64,000 nt of DNA. Source: Auanema rhodensis (taxonomy: Eukaryota; Animalia; Nematoda). How positions within the stretch are numbered: position 1 is the stretch's first letter; each line of letters opens with the position of its first letter. Location: the NCBI GenBank assembly GCA_964057225.1, contig OZ059895.1:13826001-13890000 (forward strand), given 5' to 3'. Under the pieces are notes generated by a model. That model did no database searches. It was not told where the DNA came from and saw only the letters and a program-made list of their open reading frames with translations. Below, one piece after another: positions 10,274 through 31,200 of the stretch. Both the position numbers and the translations under genes were made by a program.

Positions 10274-13015
10274 ATGGCCCCGAGAGTCGTAGGCTCCATC
10301 TTACTGCTTATCGCAGCATCTGCTATTTCCGCTAATGTTATTCCCAGAGAACTTTTATTCTCTGAAGCCAAATATTCATCAGTGTCATTGAGTCCCGATG
10401 GCCGGTAGGTTCAACAAAGAAAAACTCTTGAAAACCAACATCATATGTTCAGTTATCTTGGTTATATCTCTGCTGACGATAATGGTGTGAAAAATGTTTT
10501 TATCAAATGTATTAACTGTAAAAGTGAACGTCAAGTAACATTTGAAGAGCGTGATGCTGTTTTATGTGAGTATTTCTATCAGAAAACATATCAATTATCT
10601 TTGAACTTTATAGCTTATTCCTGGACAGCTTTACCTGATATTATCCTTTATTCACAAGATAATGAAGGAGATGAAAATACTCGACTTTACAAAAAGAATA
10701 TCTCATCAGTGAGTAATTTGAAATAGATGTCTCTTTAATTTTTGGAATATTAGGAAGCTCTTGAGGCTGACCCATCTCAACGTATTGTTATTAGTGAACA
10801 ACCTGGAGTTAAAGCCATGATTCTCGGAAATAATAATGTCGAGCCTTATGTAATCATCGGATTGAACGATGAGAATCCAGCGTAAGTTAAATAAAATCAG
10901 AAAATAATTTTTTAATAATAAGAAAGAAAAATGGAAGATTCAAACTTTTCTTTTTCAGTTATCACAACGTATATCTCTTTGATTTGGTCACGAATCAGCT
11001 CCGTTTGTTAATGCGCAACAAACGATTCCCTATGATTGTACTTGACAATGCTCTTCGAATCCGTTTAGCTAGTGAAGAACTTCCTAACGGCGACATTCAA
11101 TATTACAAGTCAGATAACTGTTGAGATAGTAATGAACTTATTTTCTTATTTCAGGCCCAGTCGCAAGTTCGATGGTCGTTTATTGACATCAGACAAGGAA
11201 GATTGGACCGAATACTTGACAGTAGCTGTTGAAGACAAGCCTGCTACAGTGTAAGCATCAAAGTTTTAACCGAACAACAATATGTTTTTTAAGTCCAATC
11301 AGCTTCGATAAGGATAATATGAACATGTTCTGGATGTGGGGAGAAGATTCGGATTTGGGAACATTAGTTACTTTCCCCTTCGAAGAACCAAAACGCAGAG
11401 AAGTTCTCTACCAATCAACTAGAGCCCAGATCGGGCATATACTCTTCCATCCAATTGATCGAACACTGCTCGCAGTCAGTGAGGTTTATCATAAACCAGA
11501 ACTACTTGTATCTAATGATACAATCATGGAAGATTTACAATATTTGGTTAATCTTAGACCTCATGGATCTCTTCAAATTCTCTCACTCAGTTTAGGTATA
11601 ACCATAAATTTTAAAATTCAATACAAAAACTTTTATTACAGATATGAACACATGGCTTGTCACGTATCTTTCATCTGATAAGCCATTTGAAGTATTTGTA
11701 TATCGTAGATGGGTTAAGACCGCCGAACTTTTGTTCAATACACATCCACAATTGGAAAACTACAAGCTCAATAAGCAAATTGGATTTGACTTCAAAACAC
11801 GCGACAATCTCGTTCTTCAAGCTTATCTCAGTCTTCCACCACATGCAAGACTTGCCAAGTCAAGCGACGTCCCTGTGGCCGATAAAGGATATACTGAATT
11901 AGGATTGATTCCCGATAAACCACAAAAGATGGTTATTCTTGTACATGGAGGACCAAAGGCTCGAGATACCTATGGATTTAGTCCACTCAATGCTTGGCTC
12001 ACCTCACGAGGGTACGCTGTTCTCCAAGTAAACTTCCGCGGAAGTGTCGGATTCGGAAAGAAACTCACAAATGCTGGTAATGGAGAATGGGGACGCAAGA
12101 TGCATTATGACATCCTTGATGCCCTGGAATTCACTGTAGCTAAAGGTATTGCTAATAGAAGCCAAGTAGCTATTATGGGTGGAAGCTATGGAGGATACGA
12201 AACACTAGTTGCTCTTACGTTTACTCCTGATGCTTTTGCTTGTGGTATTGACATCGTCGGACCTTCAAACTTAGTTTCATTAATGGGAGCTGTACCACCT
12301 TACTGGCGCGGATTCTATCAAGATTTAGTAAAAATGCTTGGAGCTGATATTAGCACCGAAGAAGGACGTCAGTCATTAATATCTCGTTCGCCACTCTATT
12401 TCGCCAACAAAGTTAAGAAGCCTATTATGATCATGCAAGGAGCCAATGACCCACGAGTTAAACAATCCGAGTCCGATCAATTCGTCAATGCACTAAAATC
12501 CAATAATATCCCAGTGACATACGTATTATATCCAGATGAAGGTCATGGATTCAGAAAATCAAAGAACCAACTGGCTAAATGCGGTTTTGTCGAACACTTC
12601 TTAAATCAATGCTTGGGAGGAGAATACGAACCATATCAAATAGGACAATACAATTCTACGGCTATAGTAAGTAAATCTAGCTATGATATCAAACTAACCT
12701 TTATACTTTAGTTGAAAGCTGATGGATATGCTCCAAAAGCAGTAACTACCACCACCACCACCACCACGACTACTGCGGCAACAACTCGACAACAAACTCA
12801 AGCTGTGCCTACAGCGCCAAGTCAATTTTTCTACCGACCAGTTCTAAATAGATTCCAGGTAAATTATAAAACATTTCATTTCTTAAATAACCTTTTCAAC
12901 AAGAATAAAAATATTAATTTTTTTATTTTAGCAGGTTCAACAACCTCGGCAAACGCCATTCTTTATACGACCAACTAACACATTCGCACACCCAGTCTTC
13001 CCACAACACGGGTAA
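10274..13015 (+). CDS. dpf-6: Prolyl oligopeptidase family S9 serine peptidase with signal peptide and Thr-rich tail (dipeptidyl peptidase family member 6-like)
   Basis: Signal peptide MAPRVVGSILLLIAASAISA, then IPRELLFS..SLSPDG. Catalytic domain has VHGGP, QVNFRGSVGFG, GGSYGG (Ser), GANDPRV (Asp) and YPDEGHG (His). Last exon VQQPRQ...PQHG*. TTTTCAG at 10262-10268 precedes the ATG. Confidence 0.9.
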
Positions 13016-15706: not shown

Positions 15707-18700
15707 CTAGAATGTGTAGTCTTTTTTCTTCCTTTTATTCTTTTCGCAAGCGTTAGTATCATGGCCAAATTCTAGAACTTAGTTGTAAACTCCATCTAAA
15801 AAATTCATAAAGTTACCTTCGCATGTGTCACAGTATTCTCGTGGAGGTGGTTTTTCTTTCTTATTAGGTGTATGATGAGAGTGTCTAGCTACTTCTGCTG
15901 CCTCCATGGCCTTAAATTACTTGTATTAGTGTTAGAGCATGCAAGGAACGTACCTGAGTAGGACAATCTTCGGTGTCATGAACATCAAAGCTTTCACAAA
16001 TATCACAGTAAAGTCTTGGTTTAGGTTTAACTTTCTTTTCATAAGGCGTCGGAATTCTGAAGTAAATGTCAATGCCGAAATAAACTTTTATATTCTAACT
16101 CAGCGGCAGCAGGTTTTAGTAAATTATCTATTTCAGTCTTGAGTTGGATTTCCTTTTTCTGCTGATCAGCGATGATGGAGTTCAGGAAATTGACCTTAAA
16201 CATATTTATATGAGGAAATCTATTTTTTAATACCTGGTTTTGTAATGATATTATTTCCTGATTTTGAGTTCGATTTTTGGCTGTTTCTAAAGCAAATTCA
16301 AGCTCATCTACTTTCTCAGCAAGTGCCATATTTTTTTTTCGTAGATCTGCTTCTAACTCATTGAATAGTTCTCTTAATACCAAAATAGCATTAAAGAGGC
16401 AAAAATAACGATTACGACATACAATTGCTTGCGAGTATCAATCAGAGGACTTTGATTTGCTTCCTTTTCTTTTATAGATTCCAATAACTTTTCATTCTCA
16501 ACTTTCACAGAAGAGTTTTGATCGGAAAGTACTTTCAGCTGAACAGACATTGTAAGTCAAAACATTTTATGGCTATACCTGGGATTCAAGTTCGCGGATG
16601 CGATTCAAGTTGTCAGAAACGGTTTTCTGAGCATCGCTCAAGTCTGTTGAAGTAGCTATGTGATTTCTCAACTACAAATAATCTTTAAATATCACTTGAT
16701 TCCTAAAAAGTACCTCATTTTTAGCAATTTCTGCTTCAGCTTTAACACTATTAAGATCATCATCAGCTTTTTCTAAGGATTGTGATAACTGATTATTCTC
16801 AGCTTCAGCTTTTTCCAATAATTTAGATAACTGAGTTTTCTCAGCATCTGTCTTTTCCAAAGAGTCTGATAGTTGAGTCTTCTCAGCATCCGACTTTTCC
16901 AAAGATTCTGATAGCTGGGTCTTCTCAGCATCAGCCTTTTCCAATGATTCTGATAGCTTTAACTTCTCAGCATCAGCCTTTTCTAATGATTCTAATAGCT
17001 GTGACTTCTCAGCATCAGCCTTCTCCAACAATTGAGATAACTGAGTCTTCTCAGCAACAGCCTTTTCCAAGGATACTGATAGCTGTGATTTCTCAGAAGC
17101 TGCCTTTTCCAAGGATTCTGATAGCTCAGTCTTCCCAGCACCAGCCTTTTCCATTAATTCTGATAGCTGTGACTTCTCAGAAGCTGTCTTTTCTAAGGAT
17201 TCTGATAGCTGATTCTTCTCAGCACAGGCTTTTTCCAATAATTCTGATAGCTGTGACTTCTCAGCATCTGATTTTTGCAACAGTTCAGATAACTGAGTCT
17301 TCTCAGCAGCAGCCTTTTCCAATGATTCTGACAGCTGACTCTTCTCAGCATCAGCCTTTTCCAATGATTCTGATAACTGGGTCTTCTCTGCATCAGTCTT
17401 TTCCAACAATTGAGATAACTGAGTCTTTTCAGCATCAGTTTTTTGCAAGGATTCTGATAGTTGGGCCTTTTCAACTTCAGCTTTTTCTAACATTTGCGAT
17501 AGTTGGCTTTTTTCAGTATCAGATGTTGTCAAGGAATCTGATAGTTGAGTCATCTCGGTCTTCATAGCTTCAAGCAATTTTACTTGGTTATCTATCTGCA
17601 AACAACTTTCAGCATATTGATTTTGAACAGTTTTGAGTTCAGTTGAAACTTCACTATCAGATGTAGTTAAGAGATTAACCTAAACATAATTTTTAAAACT
17701 GCTAAAAACTATATGATTACTCTTGTTATTAATTCATATTTATGCTTCTCGGCAGCTTCCAATTTCTCTTCAATAGCACTAATTTCTTTTAATGAACATT
17801 CCAACTGAAATGACCATAATATATAAATATAGTAAAAACAAAGTGAAATACCTTCGATTTCAAATCTGAAGAGTTATTCATCAAGTTTTCATTCTCTTCA
17901 GTAAGTTTTGATTTGAATTCTTGAAGAACAGAAAGTTCTTTTTTAAGAGATTCAATCTAAAAAGAACATTGTATTAAAACGATTCAATTTACTTGTACCT
18001 CAGATTGACGTTCTTGTACTTCGGCATTTTTCTCTTCTTGCTGCTTTAGTAAAATAATCTTTTCATCAGAAACAATGGTCAGATTATCTTTTAATAATTT
18101 GATCTGTAAATAAAATGAGTTAAAAACGTTAATTGCTTTAAATATACTTCAGCTTGACTTTCCTCCAATTGTACTCTTGTGGAATTCAATGAAGCCAGAG
18201 TTGATTCACTCGATGATTCTGCAGAAGATACTTGAGCATTAGCCGCAGTGATCTGAAAAGAGAAGAATTATAAAATAATTTTGTTCATTCAATGCTAACC
18301 TGAGCATTAAGATTCTGAACTTCATTTGATAGTTTCTTAATCTGTTCTTCTTGGTTGCTTATTAAGGTACTTAGTTCTGTATTTTTCTTATGTTCTTGAT
18401 TAAGCTAAAAATGAAAATAAAACATTGGAATTGAATTATTAATCATTTTGATTAATCTATTTCTACAGTTGTTAAAGTACAATTCAATTATATGCATACC
18501 TTATCCTGTAATTGAGAAACTTCCGAACTCATCTGATCATTCTGAGATAACGATGCTTCACTCAATCTAAAACAAACTATAGAGTAAAGTAGACAATGAT
18601 AATACATACGCTTCTATTTTCTTTTGAAGGCTCGTGATTTCGTCTGATTTATTTCTCAGATCACCTTCGAGCTTAGAACGAATAGTGGTCTCAGCAGCAA

Positions 18701-21700
18701 GTGATCGTTCAAGCTAAAACTGAATAAAATAATGAATGCCCTTTATAGATACCTTTGTGATATTATCCGCCTGTTCATCTTGAGCACGCTTGAAATTTGT
18801 TTCATCAGCTTGTAGCTTTTCTTTCAAAGTGGAAATACAGTCAGATTGATTTTTAATTTCAATTTCTGCCCTTAAAATATTTTGTTCGAAGAAAATAAGA
18901 AATAAGAATATTTATACTCTTTGATTTTCCCCATTAAATGTTCAACTTCGGATACATTCTTGGCACATTCCGCTTTGGCAGCTTCCAAGTCTTTAGCCAT
19001 AGTGCTTTCTCCCATTTTGAAGGATTCAACAGAACTTTGAAGAGCTTCATATGAGTTCTTAACATTCTGCAATTCATTTTGCACAGTATCTATAATTTTA
19101 TTCTTCTCGGAAATTTCCTCAGTGCCAGACGATAGCAATGTTTGCAAGCTGAAAAAATAATAATATTAATAATTAAATAACAATTCATACTTAGAAGATT
19201 CTTCCTGTGCCTTATTAAGATGTTCTTCCAATTTTTTATTACTTCGCTCAAGAATACAAATCTTATCTTCCAACTCGTGCTTTAAGGAAATATTATTTTC
19301 CTTCTAAAAAAATGTTTTTAATAAACTAATCCTATATAGAAAACCTCTGAATCAAATTCATTAGTAATACCATCCAGCTTTTCCTTCAATGTTTTTCTCT
19401 CAACATCAATATCCGTCAGATCATTCGTAAGCCTAAAAAAAATACTTACTTACTTATGGTTTATCTGCAAGTCTTACTTTTCAACTTCTTTTACTTTATT
19501 TCTCAGCTCTCGTTCAACTTCATTTAGTTTCAGGTTTATATCTTCTTCTTGTTTTTTCGTAACTGACAATTGCTCCTTGATCTAAAAAAATTGTCATAAT
19601 GCAGTAAAAGGTACGTATAATACATTATTCAATAGAGTTTCATTATCAGTTGTCATTAATTCCTTTTCCTTCTCATACTGTTCTTTCAGAAGTTTTAGTT
19701 CTTCTTGGGCGGCGTTTACTTTCGCATGCTCTTCCTCAGCCTTCTGTTTCAGCGTTGCTTCGTTCTCTTGTTTCACCTTAATCTGATCTTCAGCAGCATT
19801 AGCAATTTGGGTTTCCAAATGAGTTATCTGAAACGTTTTCCTTACTCTGGATAAACATATATAGACCGCCTGCCTTTTCTTTTTCAGCTGATAGAGCCTC
19901 TTGTGCTTGTCTCAATTTGTCTTCCACGTCTGCTTTATCCTTCTCATACTGTTCTTTTAGAAGTTGTATTTCTTTTTGGGCGGCATGTTCTTCTTCAGCC
20001 TTCTGTTTCAGCGTTGCTTCGTTCTCTTGTTTCACCTTAATCTGATCTTCAGCAGCATTAGCAATTTGTGTTTCCAAATGAGTTATCTGTAATGTTTTTC
20101 ATATTCTGAATAAGCAGGTATAGATCAGCCACCTTCTCCTTTTCAGCTGATAGAGCATCTTGTGCTTCTCTCAATTTATCTTCCACGTCTGCTTTAGCCT
20201 TCTCATACTGTTCTTTCAAAAGTTTCATTTCTTCTTGGGCAGCATTTACTTTGGCATGCTCTTCCGCAGCCTTTTGTTTCAGTGTTGCTTCGTTTTCATG
20301 CTTCACCTTAATTTGATCTTCAGCAGCATTAGCGATTTGTGCTTCCAAGTGAATTATCTGTAATGTTTCTCATATTCTGAATAAGCACGTATAGATCAGC
20401 TACCTTTTCCTTTTCAGCTGCAATAGTCTCTTGTGCTTGTCTCAATTTATCTTCCACGTCTGCTTTATCCTTCTCAGCGATTTCCAAATTAGAAGACAAA
20501 GTTGCTATCTTCTCAGTTGATAATTCATGGTCTTCGTTCATTTGTTTTTTCATTTTTTCCAAACTTTCTGTATTATTGATAAATTCGGTTTGGGAATTCT
20601 AAATTTATATAAAAATTAACATATCATAAACTCTACTTTAATACCTTTATATCATCTTCCAATTTTTGAAGAATAATATTCTTTTCAGAAAGTAGTTCGT
20701 TAAGCTTAAAAAATTGATTTGATCATTCATAAACCAAAAATAGAATTTACTAACCTGCTTGACCTGTTCAATTTGAGATTTAAGAGCATTATCTAAGTCC
20801 TTGTTATGAGCCTCAAGTTTTGAATTATTCTCCAGAATAGTATTCTTCTCTTTCTCTTGAGCAGTAATGGTTTCCTATAGAAAATATGTGTAAACGAAAC
20901 CTAAAAAAGAAATAACTTGAAGTTGAATAGATGCAGTTCCTTGTTCAGCAGTTAATGATTTCAACAGTTCTTTCTGATTTGTGCTTTCCTTTTCACTTTC
21001 AGTTATTTTTTCTAAAATATTTTTTTAAAGCAATATTGACACATGTATATACGTTGAAGTTCCTTAATTTGTGATTCAAATTCACTTGTTGCGACATCAA
21101 ACTTGGATTTCTGTTCCGATAGTGATTTATCAGATAATTCAAGTTTTTGCATAAGATCTTGTAGCTCCTAAAAATAAAATAAAATGTTAGTGATAACAAA
21201 GAAAAAAAACCTTTTCAAATTGAACTTTCATCTCTTCAAAGTTGTCCTGTACTACTTTCAAAGAGTTTTTCTCATTTAACAAAGTATCTCTAGCCTAAAA
21301 CAACAGAAAATTAATTTTACATTGGAAAGAACTAACTGAATCGAGCTCAGAAACAGTTGAAGCAAGGTCGGATTTGAGAGCTTCATGCTGTTTCTCTTTT
21401 CCCTCATATTCGTTAACTTTATTCTAAATATACTCATAATTTTCATAAACAGAAATGTTTTACCTTCAAAAGACTTATTTCAGTTCGTAGAACTTTTATT
21501 TCGTCTTGAGAATTCTCATTATTAACTGCAGGAGCAGTTTGAAGTGAAGCTGATTCAACTTTCTGTTGTAAATCTTCAATCTCACACTGTCTCATAGCAT
21601 TTTCTTCTTCTAATTTGAAAGTAAGTTCTTCAAGCTCGTTTTTCTTCAGAAGCAGTTCTTCATGTATTTTCTTCTTTTCCTTTTCAGATACTTTTAACTG

Positions 21701-22919
21701 AAATCACTGTGTAAGACAGAGACACAACAGGAACTCAAACCTTATCATGAAGTACTTTCACTTCATCCCCTTGATTGCCTTCTAATTCTTTGATTCTGTA
21801 AAAATATTTTTTCAAATGAAGTTAAACTATGGCAAACCTATTAGTTAGCTGAGCTATTTCAGCTTTTTCCATTTCACGTTCGGCTATAATCTGCTCAATG
21901 TGTTTATCTTTTTCTTTCAGAGCGTCATGCATTGCTCCTTGTCCTGAACTACTTAATAACACTGGAGCTCTAAGTCCTGTTCTCATGACACCAAATCGAG
22001 ACGAAGCCACGCTAGATCGTCCAATCGAAGAGAGGGATTCTCTACTGCCTCGACTTCCAGTACGGTTTTGATGCCGAAGAATTGAAGTTTTGTTATGATG
22101 AACCTGTTCAATTTTTAAAATTATTTCAATTATTAAATAGTCATTGATTACAAAGCTTTTAGTCGGAGTTTGATTCACAGCTTTTTTCGTTTTTGTGGCT
22201 GGTGTAAATATGCCAAACATTGGTTTACAGGAGAAATATCTTTTACCCTGAAATATAATCTTTCTTCAAAAATATGATTTTAAATACCTGAACACTTCCA
22301 TCATTTTTTCCAAGAGGTTGGTCTAATTCAATTCCAGCCCAAACACCTTGAGCAAAATCAGTTGTATCCAAATATCTAAGGATACCCGTTTTATCACCGG
22401 TTATTACACGATCACCAATATCAATACTATAAAATCATATATAATACTGTTTAACATACAATGAAGCTACCCAAACTCCGCCGCATGTTTACTGACTGGT
22501 CTATCTGGAGTCGGGGATTTGAAGCGAGCAGGTGACATTAGCACCCTTTCTAATTTACTTGATTTACAAAACAGTCCATAATCTTGTGTACACTACAACA
22601 AAAAATTCACATAAAAGACAACATGTGTGAAAACATACTGTGAAATATCTATGTCCATTAACAGATCCATCATTTTTTCCCGCTGCCTCATCTAATACTA
22701 TTCCAATCCACTCTCCGGGAGCAAATTTCGTATTTCCTATAAATGCTATATTGCCAACCCGTCCATTTACTCGAACTCTATCTCCAATCTTAAAAGAAAA
22801 TATAATTTATTTTTAAAATCTTCAATAACCTGCCAACTTCCAATACCACTTACACACGAAGAAACAGAAAAAACAGACTCTCTACTGTCACTCCGTACCA
22901 ACCTGGACCCTATATCCAT
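15707..22919 (-). CDS. clip-1: CLIP-170/restin homologue: two CAP-Gly domains, long coiled coil, two C-terminal CCHC zinc knuckles
   Basis: Two CAP-Gly domains (IGDRV...[28 protein letters not shown]; IGDRV...[28 protein letters not shown]). Then [71 protein letters not shown], and an aromatic C-terminus DYTF*. Confidence 0.93.
16753..17550 (-). repeat. Coding minisatellite: 19 x 42 bp (14-aa, two-heptad unit [14 protein letters not shown]) in one CLIP exon
   Basis: Units counted directly in ORF 16672..17601. No indels between units. Confidence 0.95.
19668..20476 (-). repeat. Tandemly triplicated exon+intron unit (period 271/259 bp) within the CLIP gene
   Basis: Homologous 46-nt introns at 20358-20403, 20087-20132 and 19828-19873. 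Exons repeat [32 protein letters not shown]... The middle copy has a 12-nt in-frame deletion. Confidence 0.93.
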
Positions 22920-24513
22920 TATTAATCTGAAACAGGAAAATTATCATTAACACTAAAAAATACAAAATAAACTTGCTATTCAAAGCTATTCGAAAATGAA
23001 ATAATATCTGGTTTTAACTTGAACGTATTTTCTAGTGAATGACTATTCTTTTTTATTTGTGGCTGTACTGTACAATATGAAAATTTCCGAGTTAAATGTG
23101 AAGTTTCAAAACGAATAAAAAAATGCAAAAATATTGGCCATATAGTCTGTTTAGACAAAAAACAAAAACAACTTGTTTAATCCTACTTGAACCAACAGAT
23201 AAAGCCTTTTTGAATTCTAACGAGCAATTATCAGCTCGATAATGAAGAGCTAAATTATTCATATCACTTAATTCAAATAAAGCAAAATGATGATAATTAT
23301 ATTATCTTTTTATTTATTTATAATTTCATAGAAATATAAAGATAGTATAAGCAATACTGTACACAACACATATATATTAGTAGATATGCTTTAAGTATGC
23401 TTACTAAAACTGTAGTTTACTGTAATGTTCATGTTAATTTATCATAATTAGGCGCGTACGTAAAGGTGCATAGTTTATTTTCGTGTTTACTTTTTTATTT
23501 TACAAGAGAATAGCTCGGGGGTGAGTAACATAAACAACTTATGAGAAGATATCATATGAAAACAATATCAAAGAACAAATATATATCATGTATATATATA
23601 TATATTTATTATGTTATTTATAACATATAAATCACTGTATAACATATTACAAATCTAATTATTTGAAATAAACAGATACGTAAAAGTGTACTGTTAACTT
23701 TTGTATCTCTATGTTACTGCTGATTCAAGTGTCAAATAATAAAAACATGAAAGCAAATTGAAAATTTGAGATGAAAATTGGTTTATGAATGAGTTCAAAG
23801 AGACATGTCGTTTTTCTTCAAACAAAGAGTTTTCCTAAAGATTGCTCTTATTCCTTTCCAGTTTCAATAGCTAGGCACCTATCAGAATCTATTGTTCTGA
23901 AATATCCAAATATAAATGTTTCATCAAAAGTTAAGTAAAGTCACAACTTTTGGAAGGCAAATATCAGTACTAGCATTATCATTGTTAATTAGTTTTAAAA
24001 TTATAAATATACATAATTTGTAACAAAATAGGTAAATTTAGTGAACAAAAATTAGAAATTTATAATTGGTTAGTTTTAATAATATGTAATTAAATAATAT
24101 ATTTGATGATATAGTTTGTTATACATATAATTATTGTCATCATTATCATTACTCATATATTTTTTTTCATTTTTCTCACTTGTTAGAAAATTCTTCAAAT
24201 ATGACTCATTGCAAACATTTCTCGTCATCTGATTGTCTACAAAGCTTCTATCCGATATTTGCCTACCAATAGACAAATAAATAGTATTCAGTCTCATTTT
24301 GAACGATCCCTCCTCTCTTTTTCCTATTTCCTTCTCATTTTTCCATTCAATATCTGATAACGCGTTGATTTTCTATAGCATAGTTCCAAAATTAAAAAAA
24401 ATCAAGGTTTATTGAATATATTGTGTATGTCGTACTTCTAATCCATTGGTTTTTCAATTTAATGATTTAAATATTTGATGAATCATCATTGTCACATGAA
24501 TGTTTGTTCATAC

Positions 24514-24520
24514 TATATAA
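24514..24520 (+). promoter_or_regulatory. Putative TATA box of the micro-exon gene
   Basis: TATATAA about 50 nt upstream of ATG 24566, with a TGATAA (GATA) site at 24355. Confidence 0.5.
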
Positions 24521-24565
24521 GGAGATTCTAGTATTTCATTCAGACTCAGAAATACTTTCATCGAA

Positions 24566-25761
24566 ATGGGCAAAGGTAAAACTCCATTCCCCGAAAATGT
24601 AAGTTTCAACTATCCTATAGATTTCACCTATTGTTAAACATTTTCTAATAATTGATAATATTAAAGGCTCCTCCTATTGGATCTGGAATGAATGATTACT
24701 ATGATAATCAAGGAAATCAAGGAAATCAAGGAAATTACTCTCCGTATCAACAACAGCAACCACAACAACAACCTCAAGAACATCAGTATCCACACCATCA
24801 TGGCAATCATCATCATCACCATAATGGTGTAAGTATATTATTATATAATTTCATTTTCAAATTATAAAATAATCAATTACTTAGTTTCTACATAATCTCA
24901 ATCAAGAATTATTTTGTTTATTTGAAAAGAATGTTGATATGAATTCCAAATATTTTGATTTTAAAGCTTATTGTGTGATCATATGTAGTACGCATGTTTG
25001 CCAGTTCATTTGATGAAAACATGATGCTTCCAGGATTTCTATCAGATTTAACTTGTTCATAACACTTTTTGATACAAACATTATTATTTCAAAATAATAT
25101 TTAAATAAAAAAAAATGCTCACATTATCATTATTTTCAGATGTCTTCTATTGGAGAAGGTGCAGCTCCACCTTATTATGTTGGAGGAGAAGTTTGTAATG
25201 TTCTTGAATATTCTTTTTTATATTAATTTATTCAGAATCCTCCCATAGGTATGGGTAGTCAGCCATATATCCGTGATGGATTACAAGTATTTTCTATTAT
25301 TTCATTGATTTTCATTGTTTTTTTTAAATTAAGGGACCACCAATTGGATCAGGAGGAGAGCTCAACTATCATCCTGGTCAAGTAAAACATTATAATTTAT
25401 AAAATTATAATTATTTTATAAATAATTTAAGAATATTTCAATTGGACGAGCTGGTGAAATAACTCCAGAACCATTCACAAATCATTTTGCTAATGTAAAT
25501 ATATAAAATAATATAAATAATAATATTATAATTAAATTTATAGGCACCACCAATTGGATCAGGAGGTGCTCCAGTTGGATGGGTAAGTATCATCTATCAT
25601 ATAGTATTTTATATTTTTTTATATTTTAGGGTAATAACATTGGCAGTGCCAATGAAGGAGAAGTGGTATTACTAGTTTATATTTGTTTTTTAAATTATTT
25701 TTTTGATTTTAAGGAGAAAAAGCATGGATTTTTACACAATTTATTCCATCGTGATGGCTAA
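24566..25761 (+). CDS. Orphan 176-aa Gly/Pro/His/Gln-rich protein encoded by 9 small symmetric exons with one xPPIGxG-like motif per internal exon
   Basis: Exons 24566-24598, 24667-24828, 25140-25190, 25236-25286, 25334-25381, 25432-25494, 25544-25582, 25630-25665 and 25714-25761. All introns are GT-AG and phase 0, there are no internal stops, and AATAAA lies at about 25842. Confidence 0.85.
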
Positions 25762-26175
25762 GTCAATATCAATATTTGACAAATTTCATTCAAGTTTTAT
25801 ATAATAAGGCATATATACATATATTTCTGTACAATGTACAAAATAAAGATTATAGTAAAGTATTTATATTTATATAAGAAAATTGGTTAAATATAATTTT
25901 ATTTTAACTAAAAACTCATAACATTGATGATTAATGGGGAAATACTTTTCTAGATTTCCAACTGGAATTACTTAAAACAAGAGTTTCATGAAGCAGTTAG
26001 TTACTACTATTGTACTTCTTTGAGTAAATTAATGGTTCATTAATTGTTTTTCTAAATATTTTTATATGAACACAAGATGTAACTCTCATTATTTCCACTG
26101 AAAAGCTAATGTTAGCTGTTTCTTTGTACATTTTTAAACCTTGGAAATGATGAAATAAGTAAGAAAATAAAGTAT

Positions 26176-26178
<3 letters not shown>

Positions 26179-26220
<42 letters not shown>
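26179..26220. repeat. (GA)n microsatellite. Similar GA/CT tracts at about 4803-4850, 34361-34436, 41926-41982, 44576-44630 and 50765-50880
   Basis: Read directly from the sequence. Confidence 0.95.
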
Positions 26221-28263: not shown

Positions 28264-31200
28264 ATGGTCTCTTTGGCAGCCAAATTCTCACTACTACTTT
28301 TCCTAACCTTATATCATTATATAAATTGTGTTAAAATCATAGATAATGGATTAGCACCACCTGAAATAGTTCATTCACCAATTTCTTTAAAACGTAAGTT
28401 CTTCTTCTTCTTCTTATTTTATAAAAAAAAATATTTTCTATATATAGCTCGATGTGTTATACATGCTCCACCACTTGATCTAATATTCATTCTTGATAGT
28501 TCTGGATCACTTCGAGATAAATTTCAAGATGAAATTGATATTATACGTCGTATAGTTAATCATGTAACAATTGGAGATTCTGCTACTCGTGTAATGCTTG
28601 TTCAATTCAGGTTTTTTCAATATTTTTATTTTTTTAATTTTAAACATTTTCTTTGAAATATTAGTGGAACACAACATTTGGAATTTGATTTTCATAAATT
28701 TACTTCTCGAGAAGAAATACTTGAAGCTTTAAATGTTTTACGACATGTATCTGGAATTACACGTATTGGTGGTGCTTTTGAATTTACTTTGGACAAAATG
28801 CTCGATTCCAGCACTGTAAGACATGTGGTTTTTTAAAAAGATTATTTTCTTACAACAGGGAGTACGTGATGCTTCTGTACCGAAGATTCTTTATCTGCTA
28901 TCAGATGGACGAACTCATGATTTCCCGAAAGATTGGGAACAAGCTGATCTTGTTCGCAGGTTTCTCCTCCAAATACTTCTGTCTTCACATATTATTCTGA
29001 AATTTCAGAAAAGTTCCTAACATTGATATCTGGGCTTATGGTACTGGTGAATATGTAGCTATGACAGCATTAGTTAACTATACAATGGTTTTAACTATAT
29101 TTCTAAAACATTTTCAAATAATTTTATAATTTAGGATGCAACAAAAATTGTAACAAATAAGAATCTTGAACAACTTGAACCTCAATTTGATCGTTTTCGT
29201 GGAACTGAAATTTGCGAAAAAATTCCAAGTATAGTATAGTATAGTGAATATATTATATATTATTATAATATTTAGCTTGTGTAAAAGGATCTGATAAACC
29301 ATTAGATATGGTTTTACTAATTGATGCATCTGAATCATTAGATCAATTGTTCCGAGATCAAGTCAAGTTTGCTATTGATCGAGTTGTTTCAAATATTAAT
29401 ATTCATCCAGAAGCTGTAAGGTATGTTATCTATTAATTATAGAAATTAGCATAATTTACTTTATTTTTAATTAAAATATAGACAAATGCGGTTGTATTTG
29501 AAAATGTTTCTCTTTACAGATTAAGTCTTATAACATATTCTGGAAATTTCTTCAAACATTTTGGTTTTAATGATTTTCATTTTGGTAATAATACAGCTGT
29601 TGGTGAACATTTAAAAACATTAAGATCAATTAAGGTTAATTATATATTAAAATTATAAATAATTTATTATAAATTATAAATTATAGGGTACAACTAATAC
29701 TCATTTAGCTTTAAAAGAAGCTATGAATCAATTATTAACAACTGATCCTAATGCTGGAACTCGTTTAGGAGTTCCAAAATTGGTTCTTGTACTTACTGAT
29801 GGTCATTCAGCTAGATCACCATTAGGTACTGCTATTCAATTACGTGAAAAAGGCATGTTTCTTCTTAAATAAGAATATTAATTATGAAATTCAGGTATAA
29901 TCATATTAGCTGTGAGTGTTACTCCTCGTCCATTGGTTGATGAAGCTGAGCTATTGATGTTAGCTGGAGATCCAAGTCGAGTATTTACACCAAAAAATAT
30001 ACAAGTATTTTATAATATATAATCCAATTAAATATAAAATTATAGGATTTTGAAAAGGAATTTACCAAATATGTTGGATTTGGTTGTGAAGGTGTTAGTC
30101 TTGGAGCTGATTCTAGTATGTTAGATACAGGTAGATGGATTACATACAAACATCTTCAGAACCGCAGATTCGTGGTGCAACTGATGTTACATGTGACGCT
30201 CATTCTGTTACATTCACTGTTAGAACTCAGAAGCCAATGCAAGGACTCATGTATGCACAATACTATCATGATGATGAAAATTGTGTTTTAGTAAGATTAG
30301 AAAATCATTTGAATATGAAAAACATGAAACATGTTCAGGTAACAAGAGGTGATACTCGTGAAGTAACAATAACATTACGTGAAGGAACATGTGGAGTTAT
30401 CAAAACCCCAACAGCTGTATGAGCATCATCTGAATCTTCGATTTCAAATTTTTTCCTTTTAGAATGAAGCTGGAATTCAATTTAATGTTACAATCATTTT
30501 ACAATTTCATCCTTTGATAATGACAAGAGCTGATCAGGTAAAATATTAAAAATATTTTGAATTTTTAAATTTTTTTTTAAAATTTCAAGGGTTTGGATGT
30601 AAATTGTATTTTCAATCAACCACCAACAAGACAAGAATTAGATAGAGCTGTTATTAAACGTTTAACTGATACAACATGTTCATATACATTACACAGGTTT
30701 TTTCCAAAAATTTATTTTTTTATTTCAAAATTTTAAATTTTTGAAGATATAATCCACAACAATGTGTTGCATTAGATGCTAAAGTTGGAGAAACTTTATA
30801 TCATAAATGGACATGTGATACACGTAATTCTTTTTTTTTTTTTTTTAAATTAATTAATTTTAAAAATTAATTTTTAGCTCCACAATATAAATATTTGGTT
30901 CATGATTGTCAAGCAAAATCTGAACGAAATACAGTTCAAATAATTGATTCTAATGGGTATTTTTTTATTTTTTAAAATAATTTTTTATAAAAATTAAAAT
31001 TTAGTTGTGAAATTGATCAACATTTTGTCGAAACACCTAATTATTCACGATTTGAAAGAGATGGAAATGATATTATTAACTATGTATTCCAGGTTTTTAT
31101 AATTTTTATTTTAAAATTAAAAAAAAAAATTTTTTTTAAAGGAAATGTCTGTTTTCAAATTTCCCGGAGATGAAAATATTATTTTCCGTTGTCGAATTTC

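Follow-up and report, generated by a model that had tools for sequence, protein, structure and literature searches.

What kind of gene is built from a succession of very short exons, seven of which open with variants of the same few amino acids, how did it come to be assembled in this way, and what might its product do? The question is raised by a locus on the forward strand of the window (the whole 64,000-nt stretch of DNA analysed here), for which a preliminary description had proposed nine exons at 24566-25761 encoding 176 residues. Rebuilding the gene from the sequence gave exactly this nine-exon model of 176 codons, which on joining encodes a single product of 176 residues. The quoted starts of exons 2-8 also matched exactly, with Ile-Gly at codons 4 and 5 in all seven, and the His/Gln tract and PPYY sequence that had been remarked upon are both present, in exons 2 and 3 respectively.

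Exon 1 (24566-24598, 33 nt) contains the start codon and encodes the hydrophilic sequence MGKGKTPFPEN, with no signal peptide. Exon 2 (24667-24828, 162 nt) provides 54 of the 176 codons, or 31% of the coding sequence. It begins with APPIGSG and continues with a stretch rich in N, Q, G and Y, an NQG repeat, a Gln/Pro tract and the histidine tract HHHGNHHHHH. MSSIGEG opens exon 3 (25140-25190, 51 nt), and NPPIGMG opens exon 4 (25236-25286, 51 nt). Exon 5 (25334-25381, 48 nt) begins with GPPIGSG and has 21 identical nucleotides in common with exon 7 (25544-25582, 39 nt), which begins with APPIGSG and has Trp as its last residue. The motif is degenerate in exon 6 (25432-25494, 63 nt; NISIGRA) and exon 8 (25630-25665, 36 nt; GNNIGSA), and is not found in exon 9 (25714-25761, 48 nt including the stop codon), which encodes EKKHGFLHNLFHRDG with His at positions i, i+4 and i+8.

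The length of every exon is divisible by three (33-162 nt, with eight of the nine in the range 33-63 nt), and the eight introns (68, 311, 45, 47, 50, 49, 47 and 48 nt) are all bounded by GT..AG and lie in phase 0, so that the symmetry ascribed to the exons is confirmed throughout. The exons are 33-56% G+C compared with 4-22% for the introns, and the exon acceptors are weak and AT-rich. As had been stated, the open reading frame listing misses the gene. It contains nothing of 90 aa or longer over the locus, the open frame around exon 2 being 71 aa, yet spliced contigs exist. The locus thus illustrates why annotation based on open reading frames misses genes made up of short-exon arrays.

The splicing was analysed using contigs from a 2019 study with four public runs (X1-X4), placed on 24200-26200. 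The runs are catalogued merely as 'RNA?', and the spliced contigs show that they contain RNA. All eight predicted junctions were found base-exact in these contigs, with GT..AG borders and no additional letters. The first junction (24598>24667) is present in X1-X3 and the second (24828>25140) in all four runs; exons 7 and 8 are supported by X2 and X4, and exon 9 by X4. Only consecutive junctions were observed, and no joint that skips an exon was found in the contigs of the four runs, in which rare variants are dropped. The dominant mRNA in these contigs is thus the form containing all the exons. The earlier suggestion that the number of motifs is tuned by exon skipping is not borne out at this level, at which rare isoforms are invisible and expression levels cannot be read reliably.

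At the 5′ end the contigs of X1-X3 remain colinear with the genome as far upstream as 24328-24359, giving a leader of 24328-24565 on the forward strand. The leader contains at least five upstream ATGs, a TGATAA sequence at 24355, a TATA box (TATATAAGG, 24514-24522) and a good acceptor (tttcattcag/A, 24543/24544) located 22 nt 5′ of the initiating ATG. The upstream piece is a separate contig in X4, with a depth of 3.1 compared with 151.8 for the gene body. A minor cis-intron of 42 nt with GT..AG ends (24502-24543) is removed from the leader in X4, where the joint 24501>24544 has a depth of about 3. The TATA box falls within this intron, and we note that the acceptor of the intron resembles a typical SL1 trans-splice site. 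From the low depth of the upstream piece, the leader intron with its acceptor, the number of upstream ATGs and the TATATAAGG box we suspect that the main mRNA begins near the ATG, being either initiated past the TATA box or trans-spliced to SL1 at 24544.

An SL1 RNA model gave at least 51 arrayed matches at G000:C3:6741531-7099372, on the same contig as the window and about 7 Mb before it. These have tandem spacings of, for example, 252 and 504 nt, and score 54-62 bits against an Rfam cut-off of 75. Their 5′ end is GGTTTAATTACCCAAGTTTGAG followed by GT, i.e. the canonical 22-nt leader, and the presence of this leader in arrays identifies the host as a nematode.

At the other end of the gene, the 3′ untranslated region is 25762-25810 on the forward strand, with AATAAG at 25803 and AATAAA at 25842; the contig from X4 (record 7) ends at 25810 and the true 3′ end may lie beyond this. 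A further contig of 192 nt and depth 2.9 lies within intron 2 (24880-25071), and is probably pre-mRNA. The possibility that this intron, the only long one in the gene, hosts a small RNA was considered and rejected. No Rfam family came near threshold, and the folding of the contig was no better than that of its shuffles (z of +1.95 and +0.88 for the two strands).

One contig departs from the simple order of the exons. Record 5 of X3 contains, in frame, the body of exon 5, exon 6, the dinucleotide GC and then the body of exon 5 again (covering 25336-25495 of the window). This dinucleotide and the 21 bases common to exons 5 and 7 together form the start of exon 7, beyond which the sequence of the contig is that of exon 5. 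In X3 the main contig ends at 25365 and in X1 the end is at 25362, while the contigs of X2 and X4 run through. Position 25365 is the end of the last 31-mer starting before the shared stretch, which is where a merge node in the assembly graph would be expected to break a contig. There is a possible structural variant at exons 5-7 in two of the four runs (X1 and X3). Back-splicing can be set aside as the origin of the hybrid, since the contig has GC at the junction, as at the start of exon 7, where exon 5 would start with GG. The hybrid may reflect an allele carrying one more exon 5-6 unit, gene conversion between exons 5 and 7, or template switching by reverse transcriptase.

What is conserved between the exons is small. 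When the seven motif exons are aligned, invariance is confined to Ile4 and Gly5; four of the seven have Pro2-Pro3 and five have Gly7, the prolines having been lost in the other three motifs (SSIG, ISIG and NNIG). An aromatic residue follows 3-8 residues past the motif in six of the seven exons. The 64-kb window was scanned in six frames with the relaxed motif.[PSN][PSN]IG.[GA], giving six matches. All six are inside the gene and each is directly 3′ of an acceptor AG, where shuffled sequence would be expected to give 0.52 matches in total and 0.04 following an AG. With the prolines gone from three of the motifs, any binding unit might amount to no more than IG and its context.

The codons of the motif vary at their third positions (CCT, CCA and CCC; ATT and ATA; GGA, GGT and GGC) while the residues remain constant, with TCT, TCA and AGT all used for Ser. 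This pattern of third-position changes, with Ser codons of both the TCN and AGT types, fits a constraint on the peptide and not one on an RNA word, for example a splicing enhancer. The conserved block occupies nucleotides 4-21 of the exon, and the sole RNA core common to the exons is ATWGG. Wobble-only variation at the Pro, Ile and Gly codons likewise agrees with the original proposal of selection on a short linear motif, selection being judged here entirely by comparing the exons of the gene with each other.

The gene body shows the trace of an exon having been copied in tandem along with its intron. From exon 3 onward successive exon starts are separated by 96, 98, 98, 112, 86 and 84 nt (about 97 nt), and the DNA of exons 2, 5 and 7 is 69-78% alike over 32 nt covering the acceptor and the motif, both of which are in accord with the old exon duplication that had been proposed. 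Outside the acceptor and motif the repeat units no longer align, from which we deduce that the duplications are old, with the possible exception of conversion between exons 5 and 7; the identity of these two exons could be the result of recent gene conversion rather than constraint. The phase-0 symmetry is the automatic outcome of copying one exon-intron unit, and needs no selective explanation. Exon 2 also contains a perfect 9-nt repeat (AATCAAGGA x3.3) at 24706-24735, encoding NQGNQGNQGN, which is likely to be polymorphic in length. The 9-nt repeat and the CAA runs are a sign of continuing slippage in this exon.

The gene is single-copy. The 181-Mb genome (112 contigs) was searched with the DNA, with the protein encoded by exon 2 and with a profile built from the seven motif exons, and in each case the gene itself was the only match. 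Exon 2 is the sole exon that is long enough for protein searches, in which single exons were used as queries. It had no matches among 1.84 billion representative proteins, a result that excludes close kin only. Its self score is 104.6 bits, and we estimate that about half of this (some 45-55 bits) is needed for a match in such a library. Nematode genomes are thinly represented in the protein databases searched, and the genomes searched include no relatives of this one. Exons 2 and 6 matched no Pfam family at E values of up to 1, the Atlas gave no usable match for exon 2, and the motif strings appear in none of the papers covered by a full-text search. The description of the gene as an orphan is consistent with the searches made with exon 2, and extends as far as the close kin of that exon.

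Divergently upstream (16675-22265, reverse strand) lies a gene of CLIP-170-type appearance, with a piece of a CAP-Gly exon at 21825-22265 (E 5.6e-4) and, at 16.6-20.4 kb, long coiled-coil exons containing internal tandem repeats. The forward strand has two ordinary neighbours, a large exon of a serine peptidase of the prolyl-oligopeptidase family (S9) at 11608-12711 (E 2.3e-42) and, at 28264-28656, the beginning of an exon for a VWA domain.

The protein is 18% G, 12% P, 10% N, 9% Q and 8% H, so that Gly and Pro account for 30% of the residues, and it contains no Cys; 66% of all residues are G, P, N, Q, Y, S or H. The normalised hydropathy of 0.377 is to be compared with a charge-hydropathy boundary of 0.428, so that the composition predicts an unfolded chain, in agreement with the disorder expected for it previously. 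The N-terminal sequence MGKGKTPFPEN has a mean hydropathy of -1.35 and no hydrophobic core. This supports the earlier statement that there is no signal peptide, as judged here from hydropathy. No other first exon was found in the contigs, and the upstream frame is closed by in-frame stops. Taken with the hydrophilic N-terminus, these indicate that the product is probably intracellular. N-myristoylation was considered for MGKGKTP, but its Lys3 and Pro7 are both disfavoured under the PROSITE rule. The suggestion that the terminal segment is amphipathic is not supported. The helical moment of the exon 9 peptide (0.29-0.40) is ordinary for its composition, being reached by 33-41% of its own shuffles.

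Two genome-wide pattern scans for clusters of P-x-I-G-x-G found just two loci, the present gene and an array on another contig (G000:C7:15473202-15473981). The latter contains nine units of 25 residues with the consensus NPTIGGGNADGTxNNYNNGQPNxYG in one exon, with no introns between them, and their coding DNA is a young tandem repeat of 75 nt (82% matches). The two arrays are alike in having the P-x-I-G-x-G core followed by aromatic residues in a context rich in N, Q, G and Y, and comparison of their repeat profiles by hhalign gave a probability of 59% (P 9e-5) over 10 columns covering the motif only. They differ in that our gene has one unit per exon, whereas the units of the array on C7 lie together in one exon and have a carboxylesterase-family neighbour. 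The C7 repeat exon has no relatives in a word-indexed protein search and no Pfam family.

The carboxylesterase-family exon (E 2.6e-18) lies about 950 nt upstream of the C7 repeats, and there is an ORF resembling a signal peptide in the region of the repeats. From these neighbours the C7 protein may be extracellular or secreted. We note that GDG replaces the usual active-site GxSxG in the carboxylesterase-family exon, and that a Gln-rich ORF lies downstream of the repeat exon. The likeness between the gene and the C7 array may be due to descent, to a shared reader or to convergence of low-complexity sequence.

We conclude, with a probability of about 0.55, that this is a single-copy nematode gene made from tandemly duplicated units, with a motif maintained by selection and a disordered, multivalent product that acts inside the cell. 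A unit of about 97 nt, comprising a phase-0 exon of 36-63 nt and an intron of 45-50 nt, would have been duplicated in tandem to give the gene body. If the intron was copied with each exon, every internal exon would come to open with xPPIGxG, usually with an aromatic residue 3-8 residues later. Selection on the protein would then have preserved the motif as the remainder of each exon drifted. With all nine exons joined constitutively, the product would be a flexible chain carrying seven Ile-Gly motifs, which could bind several molecules of a single folded partner or self-associate weakly, and to which the His/Gln tract might add sensitivity to pH or metal ions. A role as multivalent ligand is suggested by the strict conservation of the motif amid spacers that vary in both length and sequence.

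Other readings of the same features can be envisaged. The internal exons are multiples of three and the introns are in phase 0, so that any exon could be skipped in frame, and regulated skipping of these symmetric exons might tune the number of motifs in each protein. Such symmetry is the expected by-product of unit duplication, and by itself is no evidence for combinatorial splicing. The contigs of the four runs contain only consecutive junctions, and even allowing for the loss of rare variants from contigs we regard this scheme as improbable. It is slightly harder still to sustain the idea that constraint acts on the RNA, with the bases following the acceptor forming an exonic splicing enhancer for very short exons and the peptide a by-product. 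The conserved block does always lie at the same place in the exon, beside weak AT-rich acceptors, but the synonymous changes preserve the peptide and leave little common sequence in the RNA. Nor do we think it at all likely that this is a young or weakly constrained gene, i.e. a transcribed and recently expanded repeat ORF with no important function. The absence of detectable relatives of exon 2, the slippage in that exon and the possible structural variant in two of the four runs would be in keeping with youth. However, spacers that have diverged beyond alignment, around an Ile-Gly that is invariant in seven exons, indicate age and constraint, and splicing is clean in all four runs.

A different view of the product is that it forms a self-associating low-complexity material, in which Ile and aromatic residues act as stickers separated by spacers of Gly, Pro, Asn and Gln, giving a condensate or an elastomer-like assembly with no specific partner. 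We consider this rather unlikely, though it accords with the composition of the protein and with the aromatic residue that follows most of the motifs. Furthermore, the sole other motif array in the genome is similarly rich in N, Q, Y and G, its profile aligns over the motif, and its NPxIGGG..Y..YG repeats may behave likewise. Against this, a strict motif of 2-7 residues among drifting spacers would more typically mark a ligand array than assembly by composition, and the C7 protein may be extracellular, unlike the product of the gene.

An extension of the multivalent-ligand reading is more doubtful than self-association. PPIGxG might be an undescribed short linear motif of nematodes with a specific folded reader, so that the protein would be a seven-valent ligand and the C7 array a second client. 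The number of motifs would then vary between individuals by unequal recombination among near-identical exons, and not by splicing, and the hybrid of exons 7 and 5 joined to exon 6 in runs X1 and X3 would be an instance of this. If PPIGxG does have a specific reader the gene would be an easy handle on a lineage-specific interaction module.

Our preferred reading, a duplicated array of constitutively joined motif exons, makes the locus a clean, RNA-verified case in which duplication of exon plus intron has built a protein predicted to be disordered and multivalent. Since there is no sign that the exons are mixed and matched, the design is tidy but fairly ordinary. As things stand, one well-defined uncharacterised gene is added to the nematode annotation.

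Lastly we compare the gene with known systems. The micro-exon genes (MEGs) of schistosomes, to which it had been likened, are flatworm genes with secreted products, having exons of 3-81 bp and introns of up to 5 kb (PMC10526429); the likeness is architectural only, and does not extend to signal peptide, intron length or taxon, three of the five features that define MEGs. Both have small symmetric exons, a disordered product and the property that any skip is neutral to the reading frame. The MEGs have introns of up to kilobases whereas those of the present gene are 45-68 nt plus one of 311 nt, and their secreted products carry a signal peptide where our gene encodes MGKGKTPFPEN. MEGs are alternatively spliced, while the form with all the exons is the only one in the contigs of the four runs, from which rare isoforms would be missing. 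Eight exons of the gene (33-63 nt) are within the MEG range of 3-81 bp and exon 2 at 162 nt is above it. Finally, the gene is from a nematode and not a flatworm, and each of its exons 2-8 carries one copy of a repeated peptide motif.

The MFP3/SSQ proteins of nematode sperm, with repeats rich in Gly, Pro and Tyr and sperm-specific expression, are a tentative candidate for comparison. Arrays of short motifs in disordered proteins are well known, including the FG repeats of nucleoporins and GLH proteins, the GW repeats of GW182 and the NPF/DPW motifs of endocytic adaptors. While PPIGxG fits none of these classes, the gene has the same general construction, i.e. 5-10 copies of a short motif combining a hydrophobic residue with Gly or Pro, separated by variable spacers.
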